DNA of 63,470 nt, the filler included, from Intoshia linei (Eukaryota > Animalia > Orthonectida): assembly GCA_001642005.1 (NCBI GenBank). It is 8 parts of 8 records of this genome, joined end to end, with 100 filler letters (N's around TTAATTAATTAA, not from the genome) between each part and the next. Parts side by side here need not be neighbours in the genome. Positions count along the whole stretch, not along the records: positions 6,677 to 27,595 come from LWCA01000664.1; 7 more parts are not named here. One strand, given 5' to 3'. A program made the position numbers and the translations under genes. Under the pieces are notes generated by a model that saw only the letters and a list, made by a program, of their open reading frames with translations, was not told the DNA's origin and ran no database searches. Of this stretch, positions 2,513-27,586 are shown piece after piece (the first letter of the stretch is position 1; every line of letters starts with the position of its first letter).

Positions 2513-4094
2513 ATGCTGAAATATCAATTTAAAACAATATTAAAAATTACTGGAGTTGTTACAACTGTTGGAGTTAGTACATCACTAATTTACAAATACA
2601 AGGTATTTTTATACGATGATTTGTGTAATATAATAATCGACAGTTACTCTAGTAAGTAATTGTACATGTAATACATGTATTTTCAATTTTTACAATAAAA
2701 AAAATATTAGAAAAATTTTACTAGAGCAGTTGAAAAATTGGCCTACAAACGAAATTATTTACCTACACGTGAACAATTATTACACAATCTAAAAAGTGGA
2801 AAGGAATATGACATTTTAATTGTTGGAGGAGGTGCCACTGGAGCTGGCATAGCTCTCGATGCTATTTCGCGTGGTTTATCAACAGCTCTCGTCGAAAAAA
2901 ACGACTATTCGTCTGGAACGTCCAGTAGAAGTACAAAGTTGATTCATGGAGGTGTACGATATTTGCAAAAGGCCATCATGTCGTTAGACTATAAGCAGGT
3001 ACATTGTACCTGGTTCATTCATTATTAATATTGATGTAGTTTTTAATGGTTCGCGAAGCACTCTCTGAACGTGCAAATTTATTGGAAATTGCTCCTCATT
3101 TAGCTCAACCCATTCCAATCATTTTACCTCTTTATAAACTTTGGCATATTCCTTATTATTGGGCTGGAATTAAAATGTATGACATTGTTTCTTTGACCCA
3201 AGTATTAAAGTCAAGCTATTTTATGAATAAGAAAAGAGCACTCGAAAAATTTCCAGTTCTCAATAAAGATAAACTAGTTGGTGCAATAGTTTATTATGAT
3301 GGTAATTTCAATTTATTCATTAAATTTTTTTGTAATATTAATTAGCTTATCAGGTACTATGTAATTAGCTCTAATAAATAGATACTGAGTATAATTACTT
3401 TACTAAAAATTTATGTGTGTCGCTAAGCAGTAACATTTTGAGAGTTTAATTGATTTAATATGTAAGCTTTAATTTAATCATATATCGTATGATTTTAGGA
3501 CAACATGATGATTCACGCATGTGTTTATCTATTTTATTGACTTCCATAAAGTATGGAGCGGATATGCTCAATTATTGCAACGTTGAAAGTTTATTAAAGG
3601 ACAAGAATTCTAAAGTGGTTGGTGCATCTGTAGTGAATTCCATCAGTGGTATTATTATTATTTTAATTTTAAAACTTTAATCATCGCCTTACCTTATAGA
3701 TAAGATTTTTGAATTATAAATCATGTTAGACGAATAATTGATAAACGTAGAGTTTCATAAAATTACTGTTTTGATTTAATCATGTTTTTATTATTTAAAA
3801 TTTGATACCTTGTACAACTTCACTTATACAGTATTTCTATTCCCTAATAGTCCAAAATGTAGTAAGGGAATTCAAAATTATATATTATGGCGTAGGTTTC
3901 AAAGTATCGAGCCTCTCACTAGTCAAATTTTCGTGAAATTAGTTTTTAGGTGAAAAATTTGATATAAAAGCGAAAGTTGTTATCAATGCTACCGGAGCAT
4001 ATACGGACAGTTTGCGGAAAATGGATAATAAAGATAATGCAAATATATGCAGACCTAGTTCAGGAATACATATCGTTTTACCTAATTACTATAG
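2513..4094 (+). CDS. GPD2: Mitochondrial FAD-dependent glycerol-3-phosphate dehydrogenase, 5' exons only
   Basis: [55 protein letters not shown] and [13 protein letters not shown] across GT-AG-separated exons. Later exons are not visible before the gap at 6577. Confidence 0.95.
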
Positions 4095-6676: not shown

Positions 6677-7225
6677 CAGCGTATATATTTTTTTAAATTC
6701 TCAAACTCGTTTGATTTTCAAAAAGAGGGACAACTGCGGTTTTTGACCCGTAAAATGTGAGTTTGGGAGGTTGAAATTTAGTTTGCGAACACCCCGGAAA
6801 CACTGTAATTGAAATGTGAACTTTATAAAATTATAAGACGGGTAGTTATTTAAATAAAGCTGAACACACACACACAAATAAAAATATTAGGTCGTTTCAT
6901 AAGTAATGTTTTTTCAACAAAATTACAAAGTTTATTTGATTACATTAAAAATAAAGTTATATTATAAAATATTCACCATATTAATCCATAGAATATATAT
7001 TTTTAAATTCTCCAACTCGTTTGATTTTCAAAAAAAAGGACAATTATGCTTTTTGACCCTTAAGATGTGAGTTTGGGAGGTTGAAATTTGTTTTGCTAAC
7101 ACCCCGAAAAAAACTGTAATTGAAATGTGGACTTTATAAAATTCTAAGAGTGGCAGTTATTGAAATAAACGGGAACACACTCACATGCAAACAAACAAAA
7201 ATTTCGTAGCATAATATGTAAGGAT
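6677..7225 (-). repeat. Two tandem partial copies of the DINE/Helentron-like repeat
   Basis: Two cores TTTGACCC(G/T)TAA(A/G)ATGTGAGTTTGGGAGGTTGAAATTT, CA microsatellites and a terminal GTAAGGAT. Confidence 0.8.
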
Positions 7226-8993: not shown

Positions 8994-11738
8994 ATGATGG
9001 AGAAAAAAATTAAAGACGGTGATATTGTAGTTATATTTTTTGATTACAAAAATATATACAGAAAAAATTTGGATCCTATAAGAATTGACACAAAATATGG
9101 AGCTATATTAAAAAGTGATTTAATTGGTAAAATGTACGGTTCAATAGGAAAAACAAACACCAACATAAAATATTATATACTGGAAATCACACCAGAAATT
9201 TATACACGTATTGGGCCAAATATGACACGTTATTTGTATACAAATGATATTTCGCAAATTGTGTATAATTTATCCTTGAAGCCAGGGTCCAGTGTAATTG
9301 AAACTGGAACAGGTAGTGCAAAATTATCTTTTTCAATTTTAAAGAGTATCTTGCCAACCGGAAAATTGTTTTCTTTTGATATTGACGATATGCGAATTTT
9401 ACAAGCCAAAAAAGATATGAATTTATTGATTAATGACTGCATTGATGAAAATTTTATCTGTGAAACTAAAGATTTTACTAAAGATGAATTTGAAAATTAT
9501 TCTTGTGTTGATGCACTTTTTCTTGATTTACCTTCTCCTTGGCTTGCTATGAAGAATGTTGTAAAGTTACTCAATATTGGTAATATTAAAATCTTATATT
9601 CTGGTTCTAGGTTTTTTAAGTTTAATGTATTAGTTTTGGTTAGGTTTTTGTAAGTTAGTTTGGACGGAAAGATCGAGATTCTACTACCACAAAACCTTGT
9701 GAATTATTTTATTTGGTCATTTGTTTCATGTTTTCTAGGGATTGTAATTTTAAAAATTTAACAAATTAAAAAATGTACATTTAGATGGTAGATTTGCATC
9801 TTTCTCTCCATGTATAGAACAAATTCAGAAAACTGTTTTGACAATGAAGCGAAATTTTGACCAAGTAGAGGTAATATTTATTTTTGTTGATTTATATTTT
9901 ATATTTTGACTTTGTGAAACTTGTATAACTCAAAAAGAATACTGATTTCTGTTTTTGTCTTTATTAATTATAAAAACATATCTAAAATGGTCGGTCCGAA
10001 AGACAATGGATTACTAACTTCGGGCGTGCCAAACCGTTGTTTGGACCGTGCTTCACAACTATAATAAATACACTGATGGACCAGTAGGTCGTAATCATAA
10101 CCGAACCTATACAGCACTAGGCTATCTGAAAAATAAACTCTTATAATAAAATTTTCACAAAAGAAGTGTATTGTCATTCATAATTTATAACCGCTAGCCA
10201 CTTCTCTAATGCGCTCGAGTTGACATTTTAAATTTAACACAAAAAATAGTTATGATATTCTAGAACAGGGGTGCACAACCTGCGGTCGTGAAAGCATTTA
10301 TGTGTGGCCGTGGGCAATCCATGTCATCAAAATACAATATATCATTTTACTTCAAATTCAAGCAAAATATTTTTATCAAAATGTTACATTTTTGACTTTG
10401 GCCATTTTCTCAAAATGGATTTAAACTTTCACAATGTCAAATTAAATTTTGTACGGACATAGTATCAATGAGTAAAGTAGCTTTGCTGGTGAATTGATAT
10501 AAGGTTGTGCACCCCTATTCTAGAATATAATTTGGAAAATAAGGCCCTCATTTTACAACACTTTCGTCTAGACCAGTGTTTCCCACCCTTTTAAGTTTTA
10601 TGCTCCACTTTTATCATTACAAAATTTCTACGCCCCATCATAATTTGTAACAAATATTTCCATAGTAGTGTCATAACAGATTTTTTTATGCATATATATT
10701 ACGGCGCAACAAAATGGGGTAAAACGTTAAATTAAAATTTAATTGATTAATTAATGTGATTTTTGAGTTTAGTGTTTTTTGCAAAGATTTTCTATTTGAA
10801 CCACCATTTTTGTAATCTTTAAACGCAGGACTCCTCTTTTGATTATGTCCAACTTTTTTCTTTTCTTTATCAATAGATCACTAACTGCACTGAAGCCACA
10901 TTCTTCTAAGTATGAAGAAGGAAAAGGTAACATAACTCATGTTTCTAATAAGGATAATTCTAATCATAACAAGGAATGTTTCTATCTCATCACAAAGCCA
11001 TGAAATAACTCCTTTTATGTTGAACATTGATTTCATTGACTCATCGTTTTGCATTTTTGAGATTTTTTCTTGATATTGCGTCGAGATATCACATAGATTC
11101 ACTAGCATTGGATGCATCGTTCATACTGGAAATTTAATGTTTTTTAAATCAGAAGCTAATAATTTTAAATTATCAACTATTATAAGTACATCAGCATCAG
11201 TTACCTCACACCTCTTTAACCAATAAAACAAATAAACCAGTTTTCTATGGGAAGCCGAATGAATTTGTTCGCAAAAAATATGAGAATTTATTAATGATTA
11301 GATTATCTTGATTTCTTGACAAATTTTGACAAGCCCCACTGGTGGGGCATACCCCACGTTGGAAATAACTGGTCTAGACCGTCTATACCCCACAGAAAGG
11401 ATCTCGGTACGGTAGGTTCGGGACTGGTTCTAATCACCAAAAATTTTGATTATTTTTTTTCCGTATAACTACAAAATATGCAGAGTAAAATTAAATTATT
11501 AGTAAACGTGGTAAAATATTTAATTATGATATAATTTTTTCAATAGGTCTACGAGTTTGTTAAAAACCATTATGGTTTTAGAAAATTTGATTATTCTGAA
11601 ATAATAAATAAGGACGAATATACAAATGGAAATTTGATAAAAACCGAAAAACAAAATACAATTATTAATTTCGGAGCACCTATAGGCCATACTGGATATT
11701 TGCTATTTGCTTCACTCACAAACAAATTAAATTTATAA
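8994..11738 (+). CDS. TRMT61A: tRNA (adenine58-N1)-methyltransferase catalytic subunit; exons approx. 8994-9579, 9785-9870, 11547-11738
   Basis: LKPGSSVIETGTGSA, DALFLDLPSPW, GRFASFSPCIEQIQK and C-terminal GHTGYLLFA. Confidence 0.92.
10266..10517. mobile_element. hAT MITE in TRMT61A intron
   Basis: TIR CAGGGGTGCACAACC / GGTTGTGCACCCCTA with 8-bp TSD TTCTAGAA. Confidence 0.9.
10574..11371. mobile_element. Non-autonomous hAT element, possibly with decayed transposase sequence
   Basis: TIR CAGTGTTTCCCAC / GTTGGAAATAACTG with 8-bp TSD GTCTAGAC. Confidence 0.85.
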
Positions 11739-15136: not shown

Positions 15137-15663
15137 AAAAATATAAATAAACTTTTCCAAGTCTACAATAGAATTGAATTACAATATACATTATACAGTA
15201 CAATTTTTCCTTAAAAAATTTTTTAAAATAATGCATCAAATAATATGGTATGAATTAGAATTTACATTTTGATACATTGATGATATTGGTGTATTTTAAA
15301 AAAATGGTTGTATTGGTGTTTGGATATTTTTCGAGACCATTCATTCTAAAACCTCAATGTTTCTCCAGAAATGTAAAAATTTACAATTTTAATTGATGAG
15401 ACTAATATACAATTATATCAATAACTTACATTGACGATGAAGGTGATTCACACTTGGTGATACATAATCTTAATTTTTGCGAAACTTTTTATTTTGATGA
15501 CCACTAATATGCAGGCCATGGTATTGGAAGACTGGTATCATCCTACATTACATTTACGTTGTTGGTATTGGTAATTCAAATATTTGAATAGATAAATAAA
15601 AAAGGTCGCTCTCATACATCATAAATACATTTCTCAACTTTTAAATTTACAATTAGAATCAAA

Positions 15664-18600
15664 ATGAAATCAGTTACATTTTTCAGTGGATTATTATTTG
15701 TTTTTATACAATTGATATCATACAATTACATTGAAGCTAAAAGTAAAACATTTCATACATTTTTTTTTATAAATTTTATTTTAGCTGGTAAATTTAAAAT
15801 TAACTAATTATGAAATATATTTATTTAAATTGTTTACAGATATATTCATTTTTTTACTCAAATTACTCTATTCCATTAATTTAAAATTTTACCATGATCA
15901 ATGATCGTACGTGAAACTATTTGTTGTGTAAATGAGGATTTTGCAAAATTTTTCGTGATGGGTCAAACTAACATTATTCAAACTCTCATCCTTACTTATA
16001 TAATATGCTACGCAATATTTTTGTGTGTGTGTGTGTTCCACTTTAGTAATTTATAAATGTTTCATTTTAATATTCAGTAATTGTTTATAGTCTAAATCAG
16101 TGGTTCCCAAAGTGGGCAATTAATTCAGTTAGGGGGCGTTTTGAAAAATAATGCATTAATGAGAAACAAATTTTTGGATTAATTTTTTTTATTAAATCCT
16201 CAAATCCCCATTCATTATAGATCAATTTCAAAAGTCAGGGTCTTACAAATTTAATGAATCGCGTATAAACTTTAAAATTTAAAAAAAAAAATTTTAATTT
16301 TTTATAAAATTGATTAATCTTATTTTCACTGCTAATTAGTTCTATTAACTAAATTCACAACAGTAGCCAAATACAAATATAATAAAAATTCTTGTGAACA
16401 AGATATTGTATTTAAAATATCATAATTGTTAGAAAAACCACCAAGAAACCCTCTATTTTATAAATTCTGTTTTTTATGAATTTTTGGGTAAAATAGGGTT
16501 ATATTGAGAAGGATTTCTGATAAACTGTTATAACCATGGCATTATATATACTCAAAAATTTTACATATACTATTTATACGCATGAATTCACAACGTTACC
16601 ACACCAATATTGTTTTATAAAGTTCATGTTAGTTTTTGCAAAATTGTATTAAAAATTAGTTAAAAATGCAAAAAGTCAATATTTTTTTTGAGAGTTAGAC
16701 AATTTCAAGCACCTCATCTTGTTCACAATAACAAGTTTCATTTTTCCCCGTTGGATACTTTTGCATTGTATAAAAAAAGTGTTTTAGGACACACCTTAAT
16801 ATATATAGAACATGTAACATGTATTAAATTTATATTAGTTAATTATCATTATTAATTATTATAGTGTGTAATTAATATTTATTCATCACAATATGGTGTT
16901 ACAGTGTCCAGTTTCATTATCACGAATTAAAAATTTATGAAAAGTTTCTAAAAACCTTATTATTCACCTTAATACACCATTTTCAAAAGTGAAACTATTT
17001 TAATTTAAAGTATATGCTATATAACAGTGATGGCAAATATATGACACGCCCAGGGATTCTGCTTAACACGTTGGTAAAAAGATAATTTGAAATTTTTAAT
17101 ATGATGTGGAAAAATTAACTCAAAAGTGTGCAATAATAGAAAAGTGTACATACCTAAAATTATTTATTATTTAAAAGTGACACCCAACAAAAAAGAAAAT
17201 AACAAAAAAAATTTTTTTGACTCAACAACTGAAAAGTCTTGTCATCACTGCTATATAACATCAAATTTCAATCGATTTTGAAATTGATGCAATTTTTTAT
17301 GCATTTATAACAGGGTCAGCAACCAGTGGCTCACAGAATAATTTTGGTAACCCTTTGATTAAGCATTTAAATTATTTATTTTTAAATTTTTCAACGTTTA
17401 AACACCGATTTAAACATTTTTATAATATAATTATAATTGGCTCATTATACATTGTATAAATATTTTGTTAAATATACTAGAACAATTTCTCTTCTGTTAA
17501 AATTGAATTGTATAATGTGTAAATTTTCTAAAGCGGGGCTCGTAGAATTTTTTGATATATAAAAGTGGCACACGAAATGCAAAACGTTGCCGACCCCTAA
17601 TGTATAATATATTTATTTTGAACCATATTAATATAAAGCTTGTAAATTTTAATTTTTTAAGAATGTACAAATTTTTTTTTAAATGTATTTGAATATCTAT
17701 TATTTAAAATATTATTTTAGTGAGTATAATTATAATTATTTTATATACCGTGTTAAAATTTTAATTAATTTTATTTTAATTATACTTATATATTTAATTT
17801 ATAATTAGTTCCCCGTAATAATCATACCATTATATAATAAATATAATGTATTAATATTATTGATGATATACATTAAAATACATGTCTATAAGAATAATTT
17901 TATAGTTGTTCTTATGGATAGAGTCGAACATTAGTTTAGTGCATAATGAAAATGTAAGTAACATTAAAAAATTTAGTAAACTATGGAAACATTGAAAAGT
18001 GTTTTTATAGAAAGTGTTCTCATAGACAGAGTTTACTGTATTACATTTAAGTGTAAGCATTACTTTGTTAAAAATAATATATTATTTTAGCTGGTAAGTA
18101 TTATTGGTATAATTAATTTTGAAAATTGTACTTTAATTCAATAAAAATTATTTACTTTTTTTATGTTTTGTGAATAATATCATATTCCTTTGATAGCAAG
18201 TAAAAATATAATATATAAATCGTTATAAACTTAAAATTAAAATATATACAACATATACAGTCAAATCTCTCAATAGCGCCATTTCGGTTTTTTGATATGT
18301 GTTTATTAATGGGGGTATTCGGTGTAACGAATAGATCACGAATACGGTTACTATGTATTAATAAGCATATATATAATAAAATAATGATAAAATGAAGTTC
18401 ATTCATCCAACACGCGTTTTTTAATGTATTTGTTTGTAAATTTAATTAAAATTTGATAAAATATAATTAAAATTAGATTAATAATTTCTATATTAACTGT
18501 TTATATTAATATATTTATGATTTTAAATTAAAAATTTACTCATTTTAATTAAATTTTTTTTAAACTATTTTAAAATTGAAGCGATATTGAGAAATTTTCT

Positions 18601-21600
18601 TATATGTTTATTATAAAATTTAAATATAGTGGCGGTATTGAGAGGTCTGACTGTAATTAAAAATAATGTATATATTAATTTTTTCTAAATAATATATTTC
18701 AATGTAACCCTTAAACTCTATATCAGTGGTAGCGAAAATAGTATTTGCGTGTTGAAACATTATTTGATTAAACTGTTTTTAACTCACATCAAATAAAAAA
18801 TGATTTTATTTTAAACTATGAAATTAGAATTTAAGTAAACATACATAATCATTTGAATATATTCAGATTAAAATTTTATTTAACTTTAAAAAATAATAGA
18901 TTTTTTAATAATGCTACGTTTCGTAAAAAGTTCGACAGAGGTTATTACTAATACATTATTTAGGTAATTATATATAATGTAATATATGTAGTATAATGTT
19001 TTGATTGATAAAACATTAAATATTTTATAATATTAATACACTATATCACAGCATTATGTAAATATTATATTTATTAAATAATTAAGCCTAAAAATGTGGC
19101 AGATCGATCCTATGGTGTATATCTTAAAAAAATTCAACTCTACATACATAATCTAATAAATTAATGATAATTATCATTATTAATATAAAAATGATATTAT
19201 ATTATATAAAAACTTACAAAACTTTATTTTTTTATTTTGCATTGATATTTATTTATCATATTATTTACATGTTAGTTATATATTTTTTATAATAAATAAA
19301 TTGCAAATTTATTACAATTATTTTTTTTATTTGTGTTTAGTCGGTAATTTTAAAATTTTTATTAACAACGTTTAAAAATCATACCTGTGAACTGTGTTCA
19401 CCGAACACGAATCTTGCCAAATTTTAATTCAAAAAAATATAATATATTTTATAATTACAAAATTCAGAATCATAATAAATAATTTAATTATTTTTAGATA
19501 GTAATTAGTTTTTTTTAATTCTTTCAAAAATGTTTTCAAAAATTTAATTCACTTTCATAGAATGTAATGAAAATAGTCAAATTTAACTTTATATTACAGA
19601 GTGTTCAATGAACTTCAGTGTTCAGTGTTCATTTTATGACTATACCTTTGATAAAATTAGTAAACTTAAGTAATAATCATTACCAATAACTACTTAATAA
19701 ATTTTAAAATAAAAATAAATAAAAATTATCGAATTTACGGACTAAATTAAGAACCGCACATTTAGTAGGAAGCCTATCAATTCCAAATTTATTTATAAAA
19801 TTTTCGCGTACAATTATATTAAATTTTCCATATTTAATCATCTCTTGAACTAGGAATAATCTTTCATCTATCAAAATTATAATATCAATCAAATTTAGTT
19901 TCAGAAAGTTTACATACAGATTGTTTTGAACTTTATTATGACTATAATTTTTCTATATGAATATGCACTGAAAGTATAGCTTTAAAATAAATACCCTGTA
20001 GTAATAACATTGTACTACAAATGTATACATTCAAATTAATATCTATAAAACGGTAGTACGTAAATCAAAAAAAATAAAATATCAATTATTTTATTATATA
20101 AATTTAAATTTATTAATGTATAAATCATTTTTAATTAGCTCGTAAAACATTAAAAACGTGCATTATAAAGAAATATAATTATTAATTAATGAAACAGAAT
20201 ACTTTATCAATTTTTTATATTTTATTAACTAATTATTTTATCAGAAATATACCATTAATTAAGTATTACCAAATATGCTGCAAGTTAGAAATTTTATGAT
20301 AAAATTTTAAATAAAATTAAAAAAATATTACCTGTATATTAAATTAGAAATATTGCGCCAAAAATTTGTTGAGTTAATAACATGAATTGATAATTACAAT
20401 TCAATAATACAAAGTGCAACAAAAAGTTCCAAATGTTTTAATTGATATCTAATTAATAGACAAGATCCATATAAATATTTGAAATGTAAATTAAATTCAC
20501 TTTACAAATCCATATTAATAAAAAAAATTTATTAAAAAAGTGAATAAAGAATATAATGATAAATTTTGATTTTGATTTGACATTTATGGCGCAAATTTAC
20601 AACAGGCAATATGTTATCTTTTTTAATGTGACAAATTTTTATTTTCAATCAATTTTTTACATCAACAATTAATTGTACGGATTATGGTAATTATTTTTTT
20701 CTGAGTGATTTTAATAATTATATCAATAAATTAAACAAATTAATTTGATTAAATAGTCATTAATTGTGTCTTGAATTTCTAATATTACTTAATTTTTCTT
20801 AAATTGACTTTTACAAAATTGTAATAATATAGTGTTTAGATCCAATTATATAATTATACACATTATATTCAGTTTGTAATTTATTATTACTTTATCATTA
20901 TCAATCAGAGGTAGCAATCCATTCATCTTTTTTAATAGTCTTAGAAAATATACAGGGGATAAGAAAATGATATATTTTTATGTGGTTGGCTAAAATCTGA
21001 GGAAATTTTAATTTATTTATATATTTACAATTGATTAATAAATTTATATTAAAATAAAAACAGATCGTTAGTTTTATATTTATCATTTATATTTATCAAT
21101 TATATATTTTTCTCAATAATGATTAAATTCATTAGCCGATAAAAATTATTTCATTATATTTATAGAGTGTAATATTTTTATGATTCTTGAAATCCAAATT
21201 TTTTAAATTTAAATAATATGCGTTGATTTTAATTAATATAAAAATTTTGTTAATAAAAATAATTATTAAATTCAGTCGGTAATTATAGTTTATATACAAT
21301 TTATATCTGTAACATGTACTTAGTTTCAATTTTTATATAATTATACACTATTAAATTAATAGCACGTAAATAATAATTATTGTAATAAAAAACATTTAAA
21401 AAAAAATGTATTAATATATTTATATCATTGTTATTACCTTTATAATTAACATCATTAGGAGGTAAATTATAGAAACAAGCAATGATCTCTAAAAATGAAA
21501 TATATTTAAATATTTAAATCATAATATCTATACTTTCATTAGCATGTAAATTATATATAAAAATTAAATTAAATCGATTAAATTTAATTTCAATGTTTTA

Positions 21601-24600
21601 TATTACAGCTTGTATATTTATTATTTATTAATGAGACTATTTATAATAATTTTTTTTTGATTTCATAAATATTTTATTATGCTGCATAGATTGTAAATTT
21701 ACAATACATTTAATTGACTAATTGATACTATTAATTTATTGTTTTTAGATGGTTTGGAAAATTTTATATGATAAAGTGAAAAATTTTTGAATTTTTATTA
21801 TTTTCAGTTTGTAATTTTTTAAGTAGTTACAAATCACTAAATTATATTCGAAATTGTTAATTTTATAAAAAATCTATACTTATTATATACTTGATATATT
21901 TTCATAGATAGTAATTATAAAATAACGTGATAAGTGTATTTAAATTATATATATATATTTTTGATTATAGACGGCAATTTTGCTAAACTTTTTAGAATTT
22001 TGTTAAAATAACTTTGAAGTTATAATTTTTATTAAATTTTAAATTAAAATAACATTTAGATGGTAATAGAAAATTAATTTATTATAAACCCATTTTAACA
22101 TACGACAATTTATTTTTCGATTAATTTAAACTTATATGTTTTCAGTAAAAATTTCAAATTTATTCATATAATATTCAAACTAATTTTATAGAATGTAAGA
22201 TTTATAATTTTATTAATTTTTGTTCATATAAAAAAATGCTTATTATTTTTTTTAATTTCAGCAAAAAGTAAATTTTTAAGAATTTAAATATCTTTTTGAA
22301 TGATGGTATCATCCCATCAATTGCATTAATTCGGTTTGAACACTTTTCTATGCATGGGCACATCACAAATTTTTAATTTAAGATACAAAATGATTTAATT
22401 AAGTGTAAATCAGGAGTAAAAGAAAATTATGGATAAAATAAATATAAATTAATCATAGGATGTAAATGTTTTTATCAATACATTATCATGTATGTCGATT
22501 TGATGGGTTGTAAAAATGATATTTATTTTCAACTAATTATGTTAGATTGTAAATTTTATATTACATTTGTATTGTTTTTAGTATTATTAAAATCAATATA
22601 TATTTTAAATGGGATTTTGTTCACCATTCTTAAAAATAATAATAACAAAGAAAAGATTTAAAATGTTCGGAAAGAGGGATCTAGAATAAAAAATATATGT
22701 TGTAAATGTGCATGTTTTTTTTGGCTAAAATATTATTGTTTATTTTAATTTTCTAACATGTTTAGTAAGTAATACTATAATGCCAAAAACAAAAAGTTTA
22801 TTATACATTTATATATAATATTTATTATTACAAATATTTAACAATTATTATTATGCATTATATGTATATTTGGTTTAATATTAATTATATTAATCTAAAT
22901 ATTAATTTTTTGAATTCTGATTTTATTAATCAAATATTCTCAAAAATTAAGTATTCCAATAATTTTAGTGAGTAAAATATTATAATAATAATAATATGTA
23001 TATTAGGCTGTGCAATTAAAATTATTTTGATAATTTTCGAGGACGATTAGTTCACAATCTGTTCATTTATGTAATATTTAGATTAGTTCGAAATAAAAAT
23101 ATTTAAAAATAGTCTACCCACTCGAATCGGCATTTTTGTTAAGATCCCATTGTAGATTATGTTATTTTACAGAAAAATACACCAGATGTGCACTAATCGA
23201 CCTTGATTCTTGAATAAGTGTGAACCCTAATGATTTGAGCCTAATGTACAATGTACATATAAATATTTGAAAAAATTTTGTAATTTTATTGAATTTTTAA
23301 TACAATTGTAAATGTGAAAATGTATAGCAAGTAATTTTTTTCTAATATGAACAATACCATTTTGATATTTGTGTATGTATAATATACATTCTATATTTAT
23401 GACGACAACGGTATTGCTGATGCTATTATATGATTATTACCAATCCATATTATTTCGAATGTCTGAATTGCTTCAGCTATACTTGGTGTGTCTTAATTAG
23501 TTTATACAGGGGTCCCAAATTCACCTTATCAACTGCTATATATAGATTTTATAAAAATTACTAAGTGATTACTGAGTTCTCGGTTTTAGTATTTTTGACT
23601 TTATTTATTTTATTTTGACCGAGTTCTTATATTTTTTTATTGATTTTAAAATTCATCTCTTCCTTTCATAAATAATTTTGATAATCATTAATATAGCATT
23701 TTTTATGGGCGTTGAACTTCAAAGTTTGAATTATGATATTTTTGATACATTATTACCTAACAGGTTCTTATTTTGGGCCATCCCCAATCGTAGTACATAC
23801 TTTTTACTGAAGCTATAATAGGTGTGAAATTGTGTGTTCAATTTTTGTAAAAAGTAATGAGTTTTAAAACTCAATACTTTTTAGAATAAACATATTTTAA
23901 AAATTATTAATTTTGTTAATCAGATTGGTTTTTCAATCAAAGCATTAAAAAATTGCATTAAATAAATAATTAAATTATCAATACTTTCAACTAGTACATC
24001 AGATGAAATATTATTTTCTGCGACGGGGTTATCCACGTCTATTGGTAAAACTAGGATTACGCCAGAAATAATTGAAACTGATTTTTAAAATACAATAAAA
24101 ACTTGATGTCCACAAAAACTAATTTATAAACAATTTTTTGTTAATAACAAATTTAACTATCTACTACTTTATACTAGTTTATATATGATACTACTTTCTT
24201 ATAAATTTCGGATATTATTATCCTCTAAATATCAGTTATTTATTTATTGTATATAATTTATTTTTTATTGCCATCGAAAATCAGCAAGATTAATTGTATG
24301 TTTTGAATTTTTTACGTTTTGTGAACCAAAATTGAAAACTCATCAAATTGTTTTTAAGTATTTTTATTAAATTTTGAAAAAACGTACTTACTGAGTTTTT
24401 AAAAAAAAAATTGTTTTACTGAGTTTTACTATACTGGATTTTTATTTTGTAAAAAAAAGTACTTAGTGCTTACTGATTTCCTAAAAAACTAAGTTGAACA
24501 CACTAGTACAAAATATCAATAAATGATGATAGCTAATGTACTCGTCAATGGTGTAAATAAATATATAATTAATAATTATGTATTTATTTAATTATAATTA

Positions 24601-27586
24601 AATCACAAATATTAAATATTAAAAATGAATAAATACTTTTAAAGAATGTAAATTAATTGATATATCATCTATTTTATATATATTATATACATTACATACA
24701 TCTGGATAGGGCTGAATCTACACTTTCTCAATCATTTACCCATTACTAATTCAGGTATTTTCAATATTGATTTTGGGAAAATTGTTTAAAATTATTAAAA
24801 TTATTAAAAAGTAATTAATCGTAAAACCTTACATTAAATTTCACATTATGTACATGTTTTTTGCCAAAATAATGTAATCATAAAATAAAATCGTAAAATC
24901 GATTCATACGGTAAATTAAATTTTTCATTTTAATAATTTAAGATAAATCACATTTTTTTATTTTATGTGTTAGACTAGTGACCGCCAAAATATATGATCG
25001 GCAGAAACCAGTTACGATTCTTTGTTAAAAGTACCTTTATCTGATTAATTTTGATTAAACGTTAAAAATACGAATGTTGTGACATTTCAAAAATATTTTT
25101 TATTAATACTGATTCAATAATCATATTTGGAACAATAGAAAATTGTTATTACGCAATTAATTCTGACATAATACAAAGAAATTTTTAATTTTTAAATGGT
25201 GACATAGCACTAAAAAAAAACATATATATAATTTCATGAGACTATGAAAATCGCAGAACAACGACTATATGTACTATATACATTATATATTTGTATACAA
25301 GGACATGTCATGATAGTATGCTCGAAATTTTTTTATTACATACCCATACATTTATTACACCGCTAGTAAATACTTTGGTGAAACACTGACCACTTCTGTA
25401 TCATGCACTTCTCATTAATTTGTATATAACTTGTATACGTAACTTGTGTTTTATTAATTTTGATGTTATCACAAAATTTTCAATATTCTGAATGGTAAAA
25501 TTAATATTAGATGGTAATTTAAATTTAATGTTATTTTTACTTTTTTATATGTGAAATTTCTGTATAGTTGGTATGTTCATTGACATTGTTTTAATAATAA
25601 TTGTTAAAACTCATAACGTATAAGATTATATTCTTTCAATAAGAAAATACATATGGCCCATTCTCTACACTAAATATCAAAATAGCAAAAATTAAAATGA
25701 TAAATTAGATTTATTTTTTTGGTTTAATGTTGAGCATAAATCTTATATTTTACAATAATTATAAAATATCTGCCAAAAAAATTATATTTAAACACTATTT
25801 ATAGACGCTTACATATATGTTAGATAAAAATTTGTTTTTACAAAATATTAAGTATAAATATCAATCGACATATCTAGTTTTGTATAGAATAAAAATAAAC
25901 CAATTTCGATTTGTTACGTTGATAAAATCAAAAAAATTTTGGTAGCGCCAAAACTTTCAATTATAGTTATTTTAAAATAAATATTTACACATTCTCAATA
26001 AAACTCTAAAGTTTTAATGTGATGTCAGATAGTTACATATGCATCTTATTTGAAAAGAAATTTAAAAATAAGCATCATTAAGATGTCATTCTAAGACTTT
26101 TAAATACTGTAACGCCAATAAGTTTAAATTAAATTAATTAAATGAATCAATCAATTGATATAGATATGACCAATACAACTGAACATTGTTCCAATTGCGC
26201 GAAAAAGACAAAGAATAACGATGAATTCAAGAAAAATAATAGAGAAAGTAGCGTTATCGGGTGTATAACTCATAAAAATGAAGTTATAAATACATTTGGT
26301 AACGAGATAATGATATTAAGTACTAGCAGTAACTTCAATAGTGTACTACTAGAAACTTATATATCAAACATTATATTTCATGTAAAAAATGAATTAACAT
26401 AATATATTTATTCCAGAGTGAAGTGAGTTTAACATTAGTTACTCTAAAGTTACTATATCGTTACTGAGAAAGGAAAAAAAATTATAGAAGGAGGTATATA
26501 AAACACAATATACAAAAACACATCTTTTTGCTTTGTGTACCGACAATGGAGATAAAGGGGAAAATGCTGTTAGAACATATTTAAATCAAATTTTTGATAT
26601 GTATAAAATAAAAAACAAAACTGTAATCGTATGGTCTGATGGACCATACGGTGAATTTAAAAATAAATATCTTGTACAGACATTAAAAATTTTGGAAATT
26701 AAATATTTGTGCAAGATTCATTGGAGATTTTTTGCAACAAGCCATGGAAAAAGTGTTGTTGATGGGATTGGGGGGCGAGTGAAGCATATGGTGCAAAAAT
26801 CAGTAATGTCCAAAAGACATGATGCCCCTATTGTCAATAATGCAATAACATTTGTTAGTACGGCTCAGAGGTTATGTCAAAACACCTTCATTAAAAAATG
26901 TCGTGGAGTTAAAAAGTACAAATGGAACAAAACAAAATTTGCTGGCATTGGAAAATGCCATAATATTGAAATAGATAAAAATCTTCTAATACTAAGAGAA
27001 CACACTAGAGACCATCCTTTTATTACATATCTAATATTATAAATTATAAATAAATGTTTAATTTAAAATGTATTGAAATTCTATATTCATTTTAAAAAGT
27101 TTATATATGTAAAGCCAAAGTTTATAATTTAATTTTAATTTTTACACTATTATAACCAATACCCATGGTTTAATTATTGGTAGTATCTGTCGACTTTATT
27201 CCTACTAAACTATTAAATGAATTAATGGTCTTCATTTATTTATAGATTCACAAGAATCTTCGATAAACTAAAAATGAACATTAAAAAGTGTTTTTTGTGA
27301 ATTTCGAATGAATCACATTCTATGTTAAAATTTAAATATTGTAATTCGTTTCTCTCCAAACTAATGCTAATTAAAATATTTTTAATTTTTTTGTGGTCAA
27401 TTTAAAGCTATTTCTAAACAATATATTATATTATTTTGTCATCTATATCTATTTATCTGTAAATTTAACCATTTTGGCGTTACAAGCATGGGCCATATAT
27501 ATACATATATGTATGTATTTATAAATGTAATCAATTCAGTGGGTATATTTATTTATAATTAACTGTACTATCAATATTAGGCAAAA
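15664..27586 (+). CDS. Putative secreted protein encoded by a micro-exon gene: signal-peptide exon 15664-15742 plus about 40 micro-exons of 3 nt (four of 6 nt); 3' end runs into the gap
   Basis: Exon 1 is MKSVTFFSGLLFVFIQLISYNYIEAK+A|gtaa. It is followed by repeated AT-rich tract + YAG|NNN|GT(A) units, and phase-1 joining is stop-free. See findings. Confidence 0.78.
17025..17250. mobile_element. hAT MITE
   Basis: TIR CAGTGATGGCAA / TTGTCATCACTG with TSD CTATATAA. Confidence 0.9.
17311..17599. mobile_element. hAT MITE, same family as 34192-34427 and 59172-59469
   Basis: Ends CAGGGTCAGCAAC / GTTGCCGACCCCT and internal similarity (AAAAGTGGC.CAC) to the other copies. Confidence 0.8.
18258..18653. 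mobile_element. Tc1/mariner-type MITE
   Basis: TIR CAGTCAAATCTCTCAATAGCGCCA / TGGCGGTATTGAGAGGTCTGACTG with TA flanks. Confidence 0.88.
19597..19998 (-). mobile_element. Mariner-like remnant with N-terminal HTH fragment
   Basis: TA-CAGAGTGT...ACCCTG-TA ends. ORF 19704-19892 (ERLFLVQEMIK...FINKFGIDRLPTKCAVLNLVRKF) resembles mariner-type transposase N-termini. Confidence 0.65.
25655..27494 (+). mobile_element. Decayed DNA transposon with transposase fragment 26533-27042 (possibly Sola-type)
   Basis: GGCCCAT...ATGGGCC termini flanked by ATAT on both sides. Motifs WSDGPYGEFKNK and WRFFATSHGKSVVDGIGG. Confidence 0.8.

Follow-up and report, generated by a model that had tools for sequence, protein, structure and literature searches.

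We describe here a micro-exon gene of the orthonectid Intoshia linei, located in a 63,470-nucleotide (nt) stretch of DNA that joins eight parts of this genome (assembly GCA_001642005.1; hereafter the window, along which all positions are counted). The gene starts with an exon resembling a signal peptide (15664–15742) and appears to continue, along the plus strand, as a chain of exons that are mostly three nucleotides long and that share one reading phase. We consider it a real, expressed and unannotated micro-exon gene, for whose 3-nt exon chain we propose ratchet-like splicing and which belongs to a class of at least some 40 loci, and we assign to this reading a probability of roughly 0.87. 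The first eight micro-exons are directly confirmed in spliced RNA, and about 23–27 further exons are supported by leave-out scoring, by lengths that are multiples of three and by a depletion of stops specific to one phase. A sequence-only reading of the same DNA had proposed this architecture, in which dozens of 3-nt exons, all of one phase, come after an exon for a signal peptide; its central claim is confirmed by RNA for eight exons and supported by statistics for about 23–27 others.

The coding part of exon 1 comprises 79 nt (26 codons plus one base) and is followed by the donor GTAAAA. As in the first exons of schistosome micro-exon genes, the start resembles a signal peptide when judged by eye and by hydropathy: it opens with MK, has a hydrophobic core (Kyte-Doolittle mean of 2.63 for the best stretch of 10 residues) and ends in IEA/K. 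Exon 1 is contained in a single public RNA run (X1, from 2024, 49 million letters, available as contigs), whose contigs we compared with positions 15560–21559. Contig record 1 of this run (449 nt, depth 184.5) matches the genome over 15583–15742 and leaves it exactly after 15742, at the donor that had been proposed from the DNA; the transcript begins at or before 15583, and the 5' untranslated region has a minimum extent of 81 nt (15583–15663). The 30 letters read past 15742, CTGTGTCTTTGATTCCCCCTGCAACATTAT, are composed of eight micro-exons joined in genomic order, given here with their positions and with their scores in a splice-site position weight matrix (PWM) that covers acceptor positions −14 to −1 and donor positions +1 to +8 and was trained on other loci only: CTG (15785–15787, 14.1), TGT (16865–16867, 13.6), CTT with an AAG acceptor (17639–17641, 13.1), TGA (17721–17723, 11.5), TTCCCC (17809–17814, 6 nt, 11.9), CTG (18091–18093, 13.4), CAA (18197–18199, 10.1) and CATTAT (19052–19057, 6 nt, 13.0), the last one in the 30 letters. 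The order of the triplets is the one that had been predicted, with two corrections: AAA at 18011, already marked as weak, is not in the transcript, and the residues that follow the signal peptide read TVSLIPPATL, where a peptide containing IPQTATL had been proposed.

The introns preceding these eight exons measure 42, 1077, 771, 79, 85, 276, 103 and 852 nt and have canonical GT-AG borders. The first of them (15743–15784) is shorter than the species median of 57 base pairs (bp; PMC6543705), whereas the two that follow it measure 1077 and 771 nt. In X1, many intron bins of the locus have zero depth, so that here the run behaves as a transcriptome and not as genomic sequence, and the bins that are covered correspond to contigs 90–95% alike, i.e., to copies of dispersed repeats. 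In addition, a peptide search of the genome found the exon-1 peptide only once in the assembly, at the locus itself and with no paralogue, and there is thus no second, intron-less copy at hand from which the transcript could derive. At position 15682 the RNA contig has C and the genome T, which turns codon 7 of the signal peptide from TTC into CTC (Phe7Leu); the difference may be due to polymorphism between strains or alleles, or to editing of the RNA.

The pattern YAG-N3-GTR, in which an acceptor and a donor are separated by three bases, occurs 38 times on the plus strand, against 5–15 times for each of the other spacer lengths between 0 and 12 and 10 times for the same spacer on the minus strand, and the strand- and spacer-specific excess that the sequence-only reading had noticed therefore stands in this density control. 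Thirty-two of these 38 sites lie 3' of exon 1, nearly all with the form (t)tag-NNN-gtaa(a/t)t, and within 20873–22546 they follow each other at 59–191 nt. The PWM leads to the same picture, since 26 three-nt sites score at least 11 on the plus strand of 15743–23400, while the upstream 9 kb have no such site and the entire minus strand has two. The matrix was calibrated on the stretch covered by RNA, in which all 3- and 6-nt sites scoring at least 11 are used, while AAA at 18011 (7.6), AAT at 17662 (9.9) and a 12-nt candidate at 16809 (10.8) are unused.

Past the RNA-confirmed part, we identified 23 units between 19341 and 23328 with PWM scores of 10.8–14.9, where about 0.5 would be expected. 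These predicted micro-exons are TCG (19341–19343, 13.0), ATA (19498–19500, 13.0), AAT (19561–19563, 11.0), TAC (20057–20059, 10.8), CTC (20139–20141, 12.2), TTT (20873–20875, 12.1), AGT (21166–21168, 12.8), TCG (21276–21278, 13.7), CAC (21363–21365, 12.8), GAG (21459–21461, 12.2), CAT (21543–21545, 11.5), CTT (21609–21611, 12.4), ATT (21690–21692, 12.6), TTT (21808–21810, 14.6), ATA (21908–21910, 13.4), ATG (22060–22062, 11.7), AAT (22192–22194, 11.9), CAAAAA (22262–22267, 6 nt, 14.9), GAT (22459–22461, 12.7), ATT (22546–22548, 12.3), TAA (22766–22768, 11.6), TGA (22969–22971, 12.5) and CAA (23328–23330, 12.7), all on the plus strand. Four weaker candidates are interspersed among them, namely ATC (21064–21066, donor GTTAGT, 9.0), which keeps the frame open, and the uncertain ATG (21749–21751, donor GTTTGG, 6.8), ACG (21971–21973, GC donor, 5.8) and GCT (23007–23009, donor GTGCAA, 8.2). 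The chain thus seems to extend to position 23330, with no fewer than 23 additional exons of high score (3 or 6 nt each), and probably on to the end of the contig.

Four late units with scores of 10.2–12.8 point in this direction. ATG (25511–25513, 12.8) and TTG (25568–25570, 10.2) are probable micro-exons, as the second stands 57 nt on from the first and the intron between them, of 54 nt, is of typical size; AAT (24645–24647, AAG acceptor, 11.3, with a background of about two such sites per 21 kb) and TGG (27540–27542, 10.8), close to the contig end, are possible ones, and GCAAAA (27581–27586, 6 nt, 6.9), at the very edge of the contig, is a weak and uncertain candidate. Consequently, the 41 units listed in the sequence-only reading divide into eight seen in RNA, 23 sustained by the matrix, four weak ones, four late plausible ones, the weak unit at 27581 and AAA at 18011, which drops out.

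At least some 40 loci in the I. linei assembly (41.6 Mb, 3,520 contigs) have a common architecture and form a class that includes this gene. Series of three linked units (TAG-N3-GTAA, then twice AG-N3-GTAA at 50–80 nt) were matched 19 times in this assembly and a reversed-pattern control twice, and pairs of TAG-N3-GTAAWT occur 18 times with gaps of 40–70 nt and 33 times with gaps of 70–100 nt, against one each in the control; the version of the paired motif with a 4-nt spacer has no match genome-wide. In 14 stretches from 13 contigs, 11–45 AG-N3-GTA[AT] units lie on one strand, with 0–8 on the opposite strand and 0–8 for other spacers. The union of the motif searches comprises 39 contigs, this one included, so that the genome-wide scan for clusters that had been advised does recover further arrays, and a rough capture-recapture estimate from the small overlap between searches suggests that the total is nearer 50–100 loci.

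One of the other arrays suggests how such chains may form. In locus L016 (contig C1593), positions 2913–3359 of the locus, i.e., C1593:7912-8358, hold a 218-nt intron body with its tttag-CGA-gtaa unit as a tandem duplicate with one mismatch, so that the CGA micro-exon recurs in identical form after 218 nt. Duplication of an intron-plus-exon unit, with one residue gained per copy and the frame kept, is therefore suggested as the way in which arrays grow, and the duplicate itself is either recent array growth or an assembly artefact. Paralogous arrays were also considered for a comparison of exon and intron conservation, and this was abandoned, as the similarities between loci are dispersed repeats in long introns. 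Array matches were found 54 times on the forward and 16 times on the reverse strand of contigs, although contigs would be expected to lie in either direction at random, and the matched contigs cluster in C2190–C2698; this skew of strand and contig number may come from the search method or from the ordering of the assembly.

The lengths of the exons carry a coding signature. In leave-one-locus-out scoring over 141 kb, candidate exons of 3 nt number 285 on the array strand and 9 on the opposite one, those of 6 nt 28 and 10, and those of 9 nt 16 and 3, whereas lengths of 1, 2, 4, 5, 7, 8 and 10–15 nt show no comparable excess (4–16 against 5–15). About 85–90% of the internal exons are exactly 3 nt long, and the RNA-confirmed ones (3, 3, 3, 3, 6, 3, 3 and 6 nt) are small and symmetrical, as are those of the schistosome genes. 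Since the coding part of exon 1 has 3n+1 letters, every later exon starts at codon position 2, a trait shared with the micro-exons of aphid bicycle genes, and every intron would be of phase 1, with each 3-nt exon adding one residue. Across 32 closely spaced runs from 15 loci, stops amount to 2 of 187 in the phase of exon 1, against 17 of 187 and 10 of 219 in the others. In the window, the chain is open solely in the frame of exon 1, with three stops in each of the other two offsets, and the earlier claim that the joined triplets contain no stop holds on condition that the weak ATC at 21064 is included. Lengths in multiples of three together with one stop-free phase are to be expected under a coding constraint, and not for spacers in a non-coding host RNA. 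Zero-length AG-GT sites with good splice scores also show some enrichment (19 on the array strand and 7 on the opposite one, in the window and loci L007–L020), and these may be true recursive splice sites within longer introns.

These data bear on two other ways to understand the locus. According to the first, only the eight RNA-verified micro-exons would belong to the gene, which past 19057 would continue with conventional exons, on this contig or beyond it, the later AG-N3-GT units being unused or something else. The spliced part was read for no more than 30 letters, and the RNA contig has 289 nt past exon 1 where the predicted chain explains 114–126 nt, which would suit such a gene; nevertheless, the density and quality of the sites do not change up to 23330, the later units stay in a single open frame with exon 1, and arrays of 11–45 units recur in the 14 other stretches, and we thus regard a switch to conventional exons as very unlikely.

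Under the second one, the locus would give rise to a non-coding host RNA that functions through its introns, as small RNAs or lariats, or through splicing itself, with the 3-nt exons as minimal spacers. A gene that is more than 98% intron and a peptide that has neither homologues nor protein evidence would be in accordance with this, but exon lengths are confined to multiples of three, and stops are depleted solely in the phase of the ATG-initiated, signal-peptide-like exon. Moreover, the introns show no excess structure (20 short introns fold no better than their dinucleotide shuffles, mean z of 0.09), match no Rfam family at threshold and are not conserved among themselves, sharing only their splice sites. 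A role as host of small nucleolar RNAs or mirtrons is not supported, given the lack of an Rfam match and of excess intron structure, and we likewise judge a non-coding host RNA to be very unlikely. An effect of chance or composition, or a diverged satellite with AG-NNN-GTAA in its unit, could be imagined in AT-rich DNA of low complexity (GC of 16–25%), where AG and GT are frequent beside runs of T or A, but is refuted, and retains practically no credence, in view of the spacer and strand controls, the existence of spliced RNA, the restriction of exon lengths, the absence of 4-nt-spacer matches genome-wide, the 0–2 matches of reversed-pattern controls and the absence, in the window, of any tandem repeat whose period matches that of the units.

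The reading that we prefer, a coding gene made of a chain of one-codon exons, has several points against it, which concern its RNA support, its coding potential and its mechanism. The support from RNA consists of an assembled contig of a single run, not of raw reads; of the 289 contig letters past exon 1, 30 were read, about 165–175 nt of transcript are not accounted for by the predicted chain, and the exons after 19057 rest on sequence statistics. If ATC at 21064, with its GTTAGT donor, were skipped, TTT and AGT would be joined to give an in-frame TAG. The signal peptide was judged by eye and hydropathy alone, and signal-peptide-like first exons of phase 1 are not enriched at the other loci over those of other phases or of the other strand (9 against 3–6, in AT-rich DNA), for which reason we claim secretion for the gene of the window only. 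The protein is predicted from RNA and DNA alone: phmmer found no homologue of exon 1 (39 residues, including upstream open codons) among 1.84 billion representatives, and a collection of 5.8 billion held no candidate for the 60-residue open frame around exon 1. No terminal exon, stop codon or poly(A) site was located in the contig, and these probably lie past its end. The order of intron removal and the mechanism of intron definition are, finally, what we infer.

With respect to this mechanism, an exon of 3 nt would leave no room for the factors of the 3' splice site and the U1 small nuclear ribonucleoprotein to occupy its two sides together, so that recognition would take place across introns (intron definition), with splice sites paired across short AT-rich introns (species median of 57 bp). 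The acceptors of the units have T at position −3 in 71% of cases and the donors read GTAA(A/T)T, and the resulting TAG-NNN-GTAAWT motif resembles recursive splice sites. We propose that introns are removed one after another in a manner similar to recursive splicing: after ligation, the 3-nt exon would be part of a long upstream exon that presents the next GTAA(A/T)T donor, and each step of the ratchet would leave three bases behind. In the recursive ratchet points of Drosophila and vertebrates, a 3' splice site is juxtaposed to a strong 5' splice site and the intron is removed stepwise, a donor being regenerated each time. The I. linei units are similar in having a 3' splice site beside a strong 5' splice site (here TAG-NNN-GTAAAT), but at a ratchet point the exon has zero length and the mRNA retains no base of it, whereas here three coding bases would remain at each step of an ordered splicing that we infer.

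Several known systems can be compared with this gene. Schistosome micro-exon genes (MEGs) have a signal-peptide first exon, after which the coding region consists of very small symmetrical exons between much longer introns (PMC4350168; PMC10526429), their exons span 3–81 bp (PMC10526429; PMC4350168) and they were reported as restricted to platyhelminths (PMC4350168). The I. linei gene shares with them the signal-peptide exon, exons in multiples of three, long introns, a parasitic bearer and the absence of homologues of known function, and, as in I. linei, MEGs form many unrelated families. Alternative exon skipping is a hallmark of MEG function; for the I. linei gene, the lack of any break in the 449-nt contig is a hint that a single isoform dominates. 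In contrast to MEGs, in which 3 bp is the lower extreme, about 85–90% of the internal exons are here exactly 3 nt long and come in runs of dozens; in addition, the gene belongs to an orthonectid and not to a platyhelminth, its exon 1 has no detected sequence similarity, and the search of exon 1 in both protein collections gave no homology to a MEG family.

In aphid bicycle genes, almost every internal exon begins at codon position 2, exons number about 17 on average and the proteins have CYC motifs (PMC9168663). Bicycle and megacycle genes resemble the I. linei gene in the N-terminal signal peptide, the many micro-exons, the phase and the parasitism of another organism, but they have paired CYC cysteine motifs and belong to Hemiptera, whereas the gene described here has one-codon exons, belongs to Orthonectida and has no cysteine, and one KR pair, in the readable part of its peptide (about 40 residues past the signal peptide). 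Isolated 3-nt exons spliced by the major spliceosome are known in Drosophila homothorax (micro-Ex8) and in human MAP4K5 and RPS24 (PMC7392893; PMC8632122; PMC12207440). These are single exons in otherwise ordinary genes, whereas in I. linei they are consecutive and constitute most internal exons of the readable chain. A full-text literature search (orthonectids or Intoshia, and 3-nt exons), whose coverage leaves out most subscription journals, brought up no account of genes built from successive 3-nt exons. We regard the gene as an extreme form of micro-exon gene in a new phylum and as a member of neither the MEG nor the bicycle family.

The product would be a pre-protein of about 70–120 residues that enters the secretory pathway, and could be either a host-directed effector or the precursor of an endogenous peptide. 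Beyond this gene, we think it likely, if with less confidence than for the reading given above, that I. linei has tens of loci, perhaps 50–100, in which coding after exon 1 consists almost wholly of consecutive 3-nt exons, under strict intron definition, with ratchet-like ligation, growth by unit duplication and an origin independent of MEGs and bicycle genes. If so, a splicing regime exists that accurately handles exons shorter than any spliceosomal footprint, and secreted-protein genes made of micro-exons would have arisen in parasites in a third independent case. Adjacent 3-nt exons, some of them with 1-kb introns, would stand at the limit of splicing and offer a natural system for questions of recognition and order.

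Programs that look for open reading frames (ORFs), align spliced sequences or search for homologues all miss such genes; exon 1 corresponds to no annotated protein, and, with no match in two very large protein collections, the gene appears unannotated. The repertoire of secreted proteins and peptides of orthonectids, and possibly of other AT-rich genomes with short introns, may thus be underestimated. The convergence of flatworms, aphids and orthonectids on signal-peptide micro-exon genes of a single phase sharpens the question of their purpose, which could be combinatorial variation, rapid evolution of length or control of expression, and the duplicated unit suggests a route by which a protein may grow residue by residue.

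The gene lies in the part of the window at 6677–27595, which is the whole of contig LWCA01000664.1 (C1017, 20,919 nt), and because this part is an entire contig, the gene probably continues beyond its 3' end. The DNA has a GC content of 16–31%. Its 5' neighbours are ordinary genes with ordinary exons: an ATP synthase gamma on the minus strand, a DHHC palmitoyltransferase and a TRM61 tRNA methyltransferase (ORF 8994–9650), which is 100% identical to the NCBI entry "hypothetical protein A3Q56_04852 [Intoshia linei]" and whose matched segments measure 585, 114 and 189 nt. Towards the other end, two ORFs of 86 and 169 residues on the plus strand (26142–27042) have no Pfam match. The longer one (26533–27042) has at least 10 dispersed copies in the genome, with 55–90% identity and mostly riddled with stops, and is a transposon-like repeat whose copy here is intact; it would sit in one of the late, putative introns of the gene described here, if the late units belong to that gene. 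A short dispersed repeat is also present in intron 2 (about 15988–16045), with at least 35 copies in the assembly at 86–96% identity, and related repeat fragments within 16000–17760 are represented in X1 at 90–95% identity.

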